From positions 124,001 to 188,000 of the forward strand of contig JANHCV010000007.1 in NCBI GenBank assembly GCA_025594325.1: DNA of 64,000 nt, read 5' to 3'. Origin of the DNA: Blastocladiella emersonii ATCC 22665. Lineage: Eukaryota > Fungi > Blastocladiomycota. Below the pieces are notes generated by a model. That model worked only from the letters and a program-made list of their open reading frames with translations, had not been told where the DNA came from and ran no database searches. Shown here piece by piece: positions 57,486 through 60,865 of this stretch. The translations under genes were made by a program, and so were the position numbers. Within the stretch, counting starts at the first letter, position 1; the number at the start of each line of letters is the position of its first letter.

Positions 57486-60400
57486 CTACGTCGCCCCGAC
57501 TGTCACCGCGCTCGACTGCCCGCTCGCCTTGCCCGAGACCCTTGCCGCGTTGATCGCGTCGAACCACTCGGCAACCTCGGCCACGCTGGGCGCCATGAAC
57601 GTCATGGTCTGCCCCGATACCATGTGGAGGACAAACGTCGCCGCGGTTCCCGCCCCGCCGATCCCGCCGCTACTTTGGCTGTTCACGGCCCCGCCGGCAC
57701 TGCCACTGATCGAACCGCCGCGGCTGGACCCGACGGTGCTTGCGGCCAGGGTCCACATGCTGAACCGGCGCGCGGCGCCGCCGCTGCCCGTATCGCGCTG
57801 GATCTGCGCCGACGTGACTTGATGCAGCTTGACGACGCGGCCAGGGTCGTCGGCAGGAGCCTAGCAGTGCGAGAGACGTTATCAGAGGGTCTTTTTTATT
57901 AAGAGAGTAGCGTACCGAGTCCACGGGCTCGAGAACGAGCAATCCCCGCCGTGTGATGAGGTGCGCCTTGGCGAGCTGCCACGCGGCAAAGTGGACGGCG
58001 AACGCGGACCGCCCGACGCGGTAGCTGAGCTCGCCGGACTTGCCGATCTGCTGCTGCTGCTGCTGGGCGAGGTTGGACGAGGACGAGGCCGCCTCGGCGC
58101 TGGTATTGCGCATGAGCTGCTTCTGCTTGGGCGCGTGCTGCACAGTAGTGATCTCGCCCGGGTTGAACGTCTGCGGCGCCGCCACGGTCGAGACTACAAT
58201 GTCGCGGACCTCGGACTTGCGCTGCTTGCCCTTCCTGGCCGAAGATGCGGCTTCGAAGAGCTTCGGGATCACGAGCGACGCCTGCATCACGGTCACGGCG
58301 CTGAACGTGCCAACGGCCTGCGCGAGGACCTGGTACCGGTGCGTCTCGACCGTATTGACGAGAAGCAGCTACACGTACGCTCGCGTCAGTTCTCGTTACG
58401 CGGCGAGCTTCGGGCCGTACGCACCACGAGAACAACCGAGAGGACGACGTTGTAAATGGCGAACCCTACGGCGCGCGAGTCGCTGTACCCGCCGCCGACG
58501 TCGCGCGTCTTGACCGCGAGCCACACGCACAGCGCAAGGATCAGCGCGTGGTACACACCCGTGACGGCGACCATTGCCGTGTGGAACCCCGGGTCGCGGC
58601 TCGCGCAGCCCGTGTACCGCGTGCTCGTCAGCTTCACGTCCGTAGGCGCGAGCGGGTCGGCGCCCTGCCAGATGGCGAGCAGAATCGCGTCGACCGACAT
58701 AAACGCAGCCACGAACGCGCCGAGAACGCGAAGCGACGGTGCGGCCTTGGCGAGGTACGGGTTGCACGCGACGCAGTACAGCCGGTACGACTTGACGACG
58801 ACGGTCGCGAGCGTCAGCGCGGCGCCGAACGCGAGCAGCCACGTCTGTGCCACACACGACGCCGGTGTTGGGATCCCAATGAGGAGCGACATCCACGCAT
58901 AGCACATGGCCATGCCCGCGAGCGCGGCCGCGAGGAGCGGGACCGATGCCGCGCGGATGGGTTTCGCGGCGCGATGGACGGTGAGGAACACGGCCGAGCC
59001 GAGCGTGATGGCGATCCCGACGCCCGTCAGCGCGAACACGGCGATCCCGATTGGGTCGCCCGGCAGCACGTTGGTCGGCGGGCCGAGCAGGTCGATGCCG
59101 AGAACTGCGGCCATGTTGGCGTTCATCTGCTTGAGCGCGCGCGCCGGGGTCGTGTCGCCGCGGAGAATGCTAGCCCACGCGGTCGAGATGTGCTCGGAGA
59201 CGTACACGTAGTTAGCGCCCGCGGGTGACGATGGCCGCGCGACGAGCTACGCGACGCGCGAGCAAGATGCAAGTGAGAAGCCACGTCGGGCCGAGTTTCA
59301 AGAGGACCAGTGTGGGAACCACGCGGCGCGTCGCGTCGTGTCGCACACCCAGTCGGCGAGGGCGACGGCCGAGGTAAGTGTGGTCCCGCAAATACACTCT
59401 TTCCTTGGCGGACAACGGGTGAACGGGGCGGAGCATGCAAGCGTACCTGCAGCCGGCGCAGCGTGTCACACATGCCGAGTGCCGCGCACACCTCGGGGTC
59501 TAGAGGTTCGCGTCGTGAGTTCTCTGCGACCATGGCCCTGATCCGCCGTCACGTACCGTCGTACAGCGCCGGTATCGACGGCAGCTTGTTGTTTGTGAGA
59601 ATCCGCGACTTCTGCACGTCCTTGCCGGCGAGATACTCGACGACCTTGGCCGCGACGCCGACCTGCTTCGAGTACCGCGAGACCGCGTACGCCCAGCCGC
59701 CGATCACGGCGCCGCCTGCACCGCCCTTGATCTCGCTTGGCAGCGGCGCCACGTCCCACGTCCACGACACGTTCGCCTTGGCCGTCGCGTGCCGGATGTG
59801 CGGCCAGTGACGCAGGAACACCGCGTTCCCCGCGAGCCACGCGTCGGCGGTCTCGGTCTCGGTAGACGTGAGCGACGTGGGCCCGATCAGGCCGTCACGC
59901 ACCCAACGGCGCGTGCGCTCGGCAATGCGGAGGACGGCCGGGTACGCGGGGCTGGACTCGAGCGAGGACAGCGTCGCGTTGGACTCGAGCAGCGTGCCTG
60001 CGCCGGCGCCGCCGAGCCACTCCATGACGTTACACGTCAGGCCCTCGTACGAGCGGAGTTGCGTCACGAAGCCGGCGAGGGTCGGCGTCGTGGACTGCTC
60101 GGCAGGGAGGATCCTGGCGAGTATCGTGGCCATTTCGTCCCACTACGAGTCGGAGAGGAGGTGGTCAGTTGCGCAGGTCGTCGTGACACGAGAGGGAGAC
60201 GGTACCGTGGACGGTGGTCCCATGAACCCGTATCGCGCGAGCAGGTCCTTGCGGTAGTACATGAGCCCGTAGTCGCTCCACGCCGGCAGCGCCAGTCTTC
60301 ACGTTCGTTTGTGTCAGCGATCATCCCGCGGATCCACTCTCAACACTACGCACAGCTTTCCCTTGACCACGCCCGGCTCGAGCGACGCGGGCGCATGCTG

Positions 60401-60865
60401 CGCGACCGCCTGCGGCGTGACGAGCGTGTCGAGCGGCGCGAGATGGCCGGCGAGCTGGCCGGGCCACACGATGTCGAGGCAAACAACGTCGATGACGGGG
60501 CTCGCGGCCGAGAAGTAGGCGTTGATGGTGCCCATAATGTCGTTCGACGTGGACCCGACTGGCTACGCGGTGGCCGGCGGGTGTGTGAGCAGGATTGGCG
60601 GGTCAAGAAGATCCGCGGGCGACGTGCCAGCAGCTGAAAGTCGATGGTGACGTCGTTGGCGGTTTGCCAGGCCGAGGTCGCGCGGGTCAGGACGTCGAGC
60701 TCGAGCGTGTTGTTGTCCATGGCTACGCGGCGACGCGTCGCACGGTCAGGCGTGGTCGGAGCGACTTGCGCCACGACGGCGGTACGTGCTCGAAACCATG
60801 AGTACGCGAACAGTCGATCGTGCATGGACGCGTAGGACCGCGAGCATAAGAAGCAAGGCTAGCAT
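57486..60865 (-). CDS. Class C GPCR-like receptor: signal peptide, bacterial-type sugar solute-binding domain, 7TM domain and C-terminal PH domain; multi-exon
   Basis: Solute-binding motifs [60 protein letters not shown] and LYDDPEVC. Class C 7TM motifs [24 protein letters not shown] and [15 protein letters not shown] motifs KSGELSYR and [31 protein letters not shown]. The start is approximate. Confidence 0.85.

Follow-up and report, generated by a model that had tools for sequence, protein, structure and literature searches.

A class C receptor with a sugar-type binding protein outside and a predicted pleckstrin homology domain inside in the zoosporic fungus Blastocladiella emersonii

Can a single fungal gene join a solute-binding protein (SBP), the seven-transmembrane (7TM) core of a class C G protein-coupled receptor (GPCR) and an intracellular pleckstrin homology (PH) domain, and what would a PH domain do on the tail of such a receptor? 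The question is raised by a minus-strand gene of nine exons at positions 57,486–60,925 of a 64,000 bp stretch of the Blastocladiella emersonii ATCC 22665 genome (assembly GCA_025594325.1, contig JANHCV010000007.1, forward-strand positions 124,001–188,000), called here the window and used for all coordinates of this gene. The G+C content of the region was approximately 65%. The original prediction, made from the sequence without database searches, was of one gene encoding a signal peptide, an SBP, a 7TM core and a PH domain. The exons, the Pfam matches and the match to the public protein confirmed this arrangement, the signal peptide being in frame only from position 60,925. The locus was therefore correctly recognized, with a span given as 57,486–60,865; its 5′ end was not, as the proposed start ATG lies 60 nt beyond that limit. 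The explanation that we favor, with a probability of about three in four, is that the gene encodes a class C GPCR with a sugar-type SBP outside the cell and a PH tail inside, the tail belonging to a family-wide PH module that would act as a general docking module.

The fusion of the SBP, the 7TM core and the PH domain is real. Exon 8 (57,916–58,368) is one open exon which carries the end of transmembrane helix 6 (TM6), TM7, a low-complexity linker of approximately 70 residues and the strands β1–β3 of the PH domain (58,047–57,916). Intron 8 (57,861–57,915), 55 nt in length with the borders GTACGC..TGCTAG, splits the domain. Exon 9 (57,486–57,860) holds the strands β4–β5, a Gly/Ser loop, the strands β6–β7 together with the C-terminal helix (57,641–57,531 for the three elements) and the stop codon (57,486–57,488). 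In total the PH domain was mapped to 58,053–57,525, in good agreement with the interval of about 57,520–58,050, the intron and the Gly/Ser loop of the original prediction. In BLASTP, exon 8 matched residues 747–788 of an Allomyces orthologue, P0003 (E 1e-7), and the match of exon 9 resumed at residue 792 (792–868). The paralogue L002 (public protein P0001) carries half of the SBP, the seven helices and the whole tail in a single frame of 744 amino acids. In the paralogue L003 the 7TM core and the tail are uninterrupted in a frame of 579 amino acids, and in the paralogue L004 an intron interrupts the PH domain at the place of intron 8. Since a single exon encodes both TM7 and the first PH half, and because the frames of L002 and L003 are continuous, the 7TM–PH fusion does not depend on splicing. 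The colinear architecture is common to five paralogues and to orthologues in two fungal phyla, and so it is not a chance pattern.

Whole-protein searches were run with the public product of the gene, KAI9175674.1 (P0065; hypothetical protein H9P43_006038, 907 amino acids, starting at ATG 60,825). By its profile matches, the product is a class C (Glutamate-family, 7tm_3) GPCR. The Pfam family 7tm_3 (PF00003) matched residues 422–668 with 136.3 bits (cutoff 33.5, E 1.9e-39), over profile positions 5–251 of 251. Exon 7 (58,425–59,246), which encodes the stalk and TM1–TM6, gave by itself an E-value of 1.8e-38 (piece 58,389–59,246) and showed six clear hydrophobic segments. TM7 was placed by alignment and was less hydrophobic than TM1–TM6. 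The nine-cysteine domain (NCD3G), which is also absent from GABA-B-type members and does not define the whole of class C, gave no Pfam match between the ectodomain and the 7TM core of P0065 at E-values up to 0.1. Its absence from all non-metazoan members of the Glutamate family was reported previously (Krishnan et al. 2012, PMC3251606).

The ectodomain matched SBP_bac_1 over residues 34–323 (64.7 bits, E 1.9e-17), and the single piece 59,552–60,142 reached the Pfam cutoff of this family. Among solved SBPs, residues 31–397 aligned to residues 28–391 of the 408 residues of 6jar/6j9w (E 1.5e-62). Other full-length solved matches were MalE3 (6dtq, E 3.5e-41), SmoF (E 5e-40) and the trehalose/maltose-binding protein of T. 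litoralis (1eu8, E 7e-38). The ten best solved matches included binders of maltose, trehalose/maltose and sulfoquinovosyl-glycerol, and all the named matches further down were carbohydrate SBPs. In a large-database protein search, the closest bacterial relatives were trehalose/maltose SBPs according to their source names, with 31–36% identity to the paralogue P0001. From these alignments the ectodomain is a type II SBP of the kind serving trehalose/maltose (alpha-glycoside) ATP-binding cassette (ABC) transporters, and not an ANF-type Venus flytrap. Since both the solved and the bacterial relatives are sugar SBPs, a sugar or glycoside can reasonably be expected as the ligand. The likeness to the bacterial and archaeal trehalose/maltose SBPs (6jar/6j9w, 1eu8, 6dtq) extends over the full length of the ectodomain; these proteins serve an ABC transporter, whereas in the window gene six or seven intron-bearing exons encode the SBP, which is part of a GPCR fusion.

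The tail was modeled with AlphaFold2 from residues 738–895 of P0065 (19-sequence alignment), with a mean pLDDT (predicted local distance difference test) of 78 and 86 residues at 90 or above. The model showed strands at residues 3–14, 26–33, 38–43, 54–57, 61–68, 120–126 and 131–135, followed by a helix at 139–156. The Gly/Ser/Ala-rich loop between β5 and β6 (approximately 57,794–57,642), of about 50 residues, was disordered in the model. The best 50 Foldseek matches of the model in the PDB were all PH domains. In the VIA comparison the PH domain of GRK2 came first (Z 14.3, root-mean-square deviation 2.4 over 100 residues), followed by the C-terminal PH domain of pleckstrin (Z 13.6) and by many others at Z 12–13, rows within 1 Z being counted as tied. 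A model of the orthologue tail gave the same PH result, with the GRK2 PH domain among its top five structural neighbors. At the sequence level, the profile A4, built from 37 tails, had only PH domains among its top 60 matches to PDB sequences, FARP2 reaching an E-value of 6.4e-7 and pleckstrin 1e-5 over most of the domain. The expectation that the C-terminus folds as a PH domain was thus upheld by the Foldseek, VIA and profile A4 results.

The hallmark Trp of the C-terminal helix is the W of the AEW motif in exon 9, in a column conserved at 90% or more across the 37 tails. A near-invariant Arg closes β1 in the tail alignments, with a frequent Arg or Lys three residues on, and the window protein retains the family-invariant Arg and Trp. 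The R-x-R found in β2 of some members is absent from the window protein and from the chytrids. The first half of the domain (β1–β4) has a net charge of +1 to +6 in 19 of the 19 aligned members of the SBP-type subfamily. As modeled, the tail is a genuine but divergent PH domain, in which seven strands precede a C-terminal helix and a long disordered insert separates β5 from β6.

The tail was then found to extend well beyond this gene. The genome searched (32.65 Mb in 21 contigs; assembly published, PMC9730499) contains at least 50 loci with 7tm_3 similarity. Approximately 2.7 kb were fetched downstream of every 7tm_3 locus (L013–L062 and L001–L004), and an iterated hidden Markov model (HMM) detected a PH-like tail at 36 of the 54 class C loci, on the same strand and within about 2.5 kb downstream of the 7tm_3 core. 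Obtained with an iterated profile from six-frame pieces, this count is a minimum where tails are split. A control with reversed open reading frames (ORFs) gave 0 matches to the iterated tail HMM. The tail was undetected at the remaining 18 loci (L013–L015, L020, L021, L023, L029–L032, L034, L035, L046, L047, L050, L057, L059 and L061). Tails of the L006 type and of the L012 type each matched further copies directly downstream of 7tm_3 matches, and since some tails matched both subfamily models, the tails form one family. The locus L012 (G000:C1:1684523-1688155, frames 103–849 and 1216–3015) has an ANF_receptor ectodomain (E 8.8e-20), with the 7tm_3 core and a PH-like tail in one frame of 600 amino acids. 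The tail is therefore independent of the type of ectodomain. An inverted neighbor of L012, 71% identical, is located about 5 kb away (C1:1692055-1693392, minus strand).

Outside this genome, the profile A2 was compared with 1.84 billion representative proteins and matched 18 of them, nearly all 7tm_3 receptors of about 830–1060 amino acids with the match at the C-terminus. They came from B. emersonii (five genes), B. britannica, three Allomyces species, Catenaria and the chytrids Dinochytrium, Phlyctochytrium and Irineochytrium. A later search added tails of Chytridium lagenaria and P. planicorne, and partial tail matches were seen in receptors of Gaertneriomyces (ANF type), Lobulomyces and Clydaea. 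The proposed search for the same architecture in other organisms thus yielded Allomyces, Catenaria and chytrids. No Neocallimastigomycota protein was matched by A2 among these representatives at E-values up to 0.001, with a profile that also missed divergent tails of B. emersonii. A reading of the 18 matches as a very small family was rejected for the same reason, A2 having missed divergent tails in the same genome. No tail match was found in the non-fungal 7tm_3 proteins compared, a sample which does not establish absence beyond the zoosporic fungi. A word-index protein search limited to the 7TM core and tail of P0001 returned three relatives only, a blank that says little.

Taken at the level of sequence, the PH tail is a family-wide module found with SBP-type and ANF-type ectodomains. 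Its presence at 36 of the 54 loci, one of them of the ANF type, and in chytrids makes it a module general to the family rather than a device for sugar alone. The suggestion of a coupling particular to sugar sensing was corrected on these grounds, and the link to phosphoinositide or Gβγ signaling is kept as putative.

Several other features of the family were observed. On contig C19 (G000:C19, approximately 182–761 kb) there are at least four SBP-type PH-tailed paralogues, namely the window gene, H9P43_006061 (276 kb), H9P43_006099 (434 kb) and H9P43_006120 (497 kb). Further 7tm_3 loci of C19 are located at 504, 507, 520 and 760 kb, an arrangement resembling a dispersed family cluster. The loci L048 (C3:1268300-1271000, plus strand) and L049 (C3:1353000-1355700, minus strand), 87 kb apart, have identical tails and 7tm_3 scores, which suggests either an inverted duplication of very recent date or a duplicate in the assembly. 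The receptors L006 (C19:1475322-1478957) and L007 (C7:7471-11106), with frames of 606 amino acids, lie on different contigs and their tails are 75% identical. In the two upstream frames that were searched, Pfam matched no family to the ectodomain of the L006 type at E-values up to 0.01. At L062 (G000:C17:302500-305500, frame 1745–2257), which is outside the 68 listed 7tm_3 matches, a tail of the L006 type was matched at an E-value of 4e-19; this is either a receptor missed by the 7tm_3 search or a tail without a receptor. The protein P0071 (162 amino acids) contains three repeats of about 50 residues matching only β1–β2 of the tail profile (E 5e-4), together with DUF3435, and is probably unrelated to the tail family.

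The remaining exons of the window gene encode the ectodomain. Exon 2 (60,628–60,722) reproduces the sequence of P0065. Exon 3 (60,354–60,562), which contains a motif region of 11 residues, was supported by Pfam SBP_bac_1 and by tblastn with P0001 and P0003, and exon 4 (60,206–60,296) by homology and by P0065. Exon 5 (59,557–60,142) encodes the second half of the SBP (SBP_bac_1, 26 bits) and starts with the motif WDEM. Exon 6 (59,447–59,499) is a micro-exon of 53 nt that encodes the end of the SBP and is colinear with P0001 and P0003 in tblastn. All introns measure 55–65 nt except intron 6, the eighth, which measures 200 nt; the donors follow GT(A/G)CGY, and intron 2 (60,627–60,563) is annotated as a GC-AG intron (GCACGT..GCGTAG). 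The junctions 3 to 8 were derived from splice signals and homology before comparison with P0065, and the translation of the set of nine exons (60,825–60,786 to 57,860–57,486) is exactly P0065. In the paralogues L002, L004, L005 and L008, whose splice sites at this place are unmapped, the matching open frame or ORF begins at the same WDEM motif, and a phase-0 intron before exon 5 appears to be conserved there. Two differences were seen in sequencing contigs, neither changing the frame: a T for G at 58,985 (exon 7, transmembrane region) in one low-depth contig of run X3, and the absence of one base at 57,899 (intron 8) in one contig of run X4 with a depth of 2.6. Each may be an allele or an error. 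The search for sequencing runs gave four DNA contig sets of one sample and no RNA set, and these contigs contained no splice joint. A skip of 1254 nt in a DNA contig of run X2 was rejected as a splice joint, one side having only 21 letters, and was considered a repeat artifact.

The 5′ end of the public model is different from ours. In the public model, exon 1 (60,825–60,786) starts at ATG 60,825, in a frame other than that of our exon 1, and is followed by a GT-AG intron of 63 nt (60,785–60,723); the protein lacks both the signal peptide and the first SBP strand. The ATG at 60,925 opens a frame with a basic-hydrophobic signal sequence followed by TVRVLM, the first SBP strand of the paralogues and of the Allomyces orthologues. 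The proposed exon 1 (60,790–60,925), outside the public model, is 57% identical to residues 6–40 of P0001. An alternative intron 1 of the GC-AG type (60,723–60,789, 67 nt) keeps the frame and leads to a model of 939 amino acids. Its terminal hexamers (GCACGT, GCGTAG) are identical to those of the annotated intron 2, and in the 939 amino acid model the motifs TVRVLM and IDFQ are spaced by 28 residues, as in P0001 and P0003. There is no sign of an assembly slip, since an independent contig of run X3 is identical base for base over 60,118–60,999. On this comparison, the public start is probably wrong and the signal-peptide exon was probably missed.

Several points weigh against the explanation that we favor. 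On P0065 the Pfam PH family (PF00169) scored 13.9 bits, below its gathering cutoff of 25.1, and PH_27 gave an E-value of 0.013. The piece 57,489–57,842 gave only weak matches (PH_27 E 9e-4, PH E 0.016), and PH was sub-threshold or absent with Pfam on single exons or single tails; across the 37 tails, PF00169 was found at E below 0.1 in 16, the best E-value being 5.9e-5. The canonical inositol-phosphate motif K-Xn-(K/R)-X-R is not conserved across the aligned tails. The GLUE, Exo84 Ral-binding, PTB (CCM2) and pICln folds came within about 2 Z of the VIA top, so that a lipid and a protein partner cannot be told apart by the fold alone. The canonical GT-AG intron (GTACCG donor) does not keep the signal-peptide exon in frame, for which the GC-AG intron is needed. 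Finally, all splice junctions are predictions drawn from homology and the public gene model. The tail might be a module of the PH superfold that binds proteins rather than lipids, a GRK2-like binder of Gβγ, a PTB/EVH1-like binder of peptides or a GLUE-like binder of ubiquitin, which would recruit or sequester a signaling or trafficking protein. The first rank of the GRK2 PH domain, by Foldseek E-value as by VIA Z, its place in the top five for the orthologue, the neighboring protein-binding folds and the missing phosphoinositide motif all speak for this alternative. Against this, the leading VIA rows are tied and similarity of fold does not show binding; the lipid-binding PH domains of pleckstrin (C-terminal), TAPP1, DAPP1 and Akt score equally well, and the first half of the domain is positive in every aligned member, as on membrane-binding faces. 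We regard a protein-binding tail as possible but doubtful. The ectodomain could likewise have kept the fold of a sugar SBP and been retuned to a non-sugar ligand, so that the receptor would not be a sugar sensor. The identity to solved sugar SBPs is modest, that of the bacterial relatives to P0001 being within the range given above, and the presence of SmoF, a protein for sulfoquinovosyl glycerol, among the close solved relatives indicates that ligands vary within the cluster. As the ten best solved matches include maltose, trehalose/maltose and sulfoquinovosyl-glycerol binders and all named later ones are carbohydrate SBPs, in agreement with the source names of the relatives, such a change of ligand appears rather unlikely.

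The gene models themselves invite two further doubts. The window gene may be a paralogue in decay or without function, with a 5′ end from which a secreted ectodomain is no longer produced: the consensus GTACCG donor does not bring the signal-peptide frame to exon 2, the public model consequently starts at an internal ATG without the signal peptide and the first SBP strand, TM7 is the least hydrophobic helix, and splicing rests on homology and the public model. All nine exons are nevertheless open and colinear with the paralogues and the Allomyces orthologues, the family-invariant Arg and Trp are kept, the GC-AG intron with the hexamers of intron 2 restores both the frame and the 28-residue spacing of P0001 and P0003, and the contig of run X3 agrees with the assembly over the 5′ region. 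Decay of the gene is accordingly very improbable. That the PH exon would be a separate downstream gene, or the fusion an artifact of gene prediction, might be argued from the intron within the PH domain, from the failure of Pfam to call the domain and, again, from the nature of the splicing evidence. This is effectively refuted by the exon shared between TM7 and the first half of the PH domain, by the two paralogues having the 7TM core and the complete tail in one uninterrupted frame, by the tail following the 7TM core at 36 loci and in orthologues of two phyla, and by exons 8 and 9 matching adjacent segments of P0003.

We therefore return to a class C receptor with a sugar-type SBP and a general PH docking module. 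In this explanation, a sugar-like ligand would close the SBP, and the closure would be passed to the 7TM core, probably dimeric as in other class C receptors, which would then activate a heterotrimeric G protein. At the inner leaflet of the membrane, where it would be kept, the PH domain would be the general docking module of the whole receptor family, and its docking would set the localization, scaffolding, coupling or desensitization of the receptor, for example in zoospores. Because the tail is found with more than one kind of ectodomain, its function is most likely a general one for the receptor and not ligand-specific signaling. Docking to acidic lipids or phosphoinositides is the most likely putative role, held tentatively and at well below even odds; in many PH domains the face that binds the membrane is positive, like the β1–β4 half here. 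As the putative partner, a protein such as Gβγ is a serious rival. A bolder proposal is that the PH domain is the signaling output or gate of the whole fungal receptor family, engaging Gβγ or a specific phosphoinositide at the activated receptor. We consider this unlikely; if true, zoospores would have their nutrient sensing connected directly to steering that depends on phosphoinositides or Gβγ. The comparable link of animals is made by separate proteins, such as GRK2, which are recruited through their own PH domains.

The GRK2 PH domain binds PIP2 in addition to its protein partner, and GRK2 acts at activated GPCRs. The entries of this domain in the PDB (7k7z, 2bcj, 1omw), whose titles describe the binding of Gβγ, are the best structural neighbors of the window tail, with approximately 14% identity and a score tied with those of pleckstrin, ArhGAP9, Tiam and other PH domains. 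GRK2 is a soluble kinase recruited to receptors, and the PH domain is one part of it, whereas in the window protein it is covalently part of the receptor. To our knowledge, the 7TM parts of the oomycete GPCR-bigrams are not of class C. These bigrams carry an N-terminal 7TM part and a C-terminal catalytic domain (PIPK, AC, PDE, INPP or TKL; PMC6033456), and a link to phospholipid signaling was proposed for GPCR-PIPK and other bigrams (PMC6033456, PMC5784254). GPR155 has a C-terminal DEP domain (PMC12716839). The bigrams and GPR155 resemble the window protein in having a cytoplasmic signaling domain on the tail of a 7TM protein; the accessory domain of the bigrams is catalytic, whereas in the window protein a 7tm_3 core carries a PH domain, which is non-catalytic. 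The Pfam search of P0065 gave no catalytic family, which places this protein outside the definition of a GPCR-bigram.

SBP-type class C receptors were already known. The precedent in anaerobic gut fungi invoked by the original prediction is published (Seppala et al. 2016, PMC5168858): these receptors, of a different phylum, likewise combine a class C 7TM core with a sugar-type type II SBP in place of ANF. The closest precedent lies elsewhere, in the blastoclad Allomyces macrogynus, in which Glutamate-family receptors with SBP_bac_1 and 7tm_3 were reported in 2012 (Krishnan et al. 2012, PMC3251606). The Allomyces receptors belong to the same phylum and share the N-terminus and the core, and AMAG_14408, AMAG_12430 and the orthologues of A. 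arbusculus and A. javanicus carry the same tail. That report covered N-terminal domains only, the terms PH domain and pleckstrin are absent from it, and the Allomyces tail went unrecognized. The PH domain of these receptors is also unmentioned in the gut-fungus paper (PMC5168858), in the comparative GPCR surveys of 2014 and 2025 and in the B. emersonii genome paper (PMC9730499). In a non-exhaustive literature search, no paper was found combining 7tm_3 with pleckstrin homology. The impression of an unfamiliar architecture holds insofar as we found no published description of a Glutamate-family GPCR with a PH domain; GenBank, however, already contained the gene, PH exon included, as a hypothetical protein, and the PH fold may already be visible, without comment, in automatic resources (InterPro, AlphaFold DB). 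What is new is a conserved cytoplasmic PH module on a recognized receptor family, together with a correction of the public gene model H9P43_006038, from which the signal-peptide exon is probably missing.

Class C GPCRs have been studied almost wholly through their ectodomains, and the surveys of non-animal GPCRs listed N-terminal domains only. The tail is a compact, well-folding domain that could be expressed alone, and the combination of defined ligand-binding modules with a common output module may be of interest for receptor engineering. B. emersonii is under development as a model for zoospore sensing, which makes the docking hypothesis testable. Most class C receptors of this model zoosporic fungus, like those of its relatives, carry a conserved PH domain in the cytoplasm, which points to an undescribed link, intrinsic to the receptor, with the inner membrane leaflet or with G-protein subunits.

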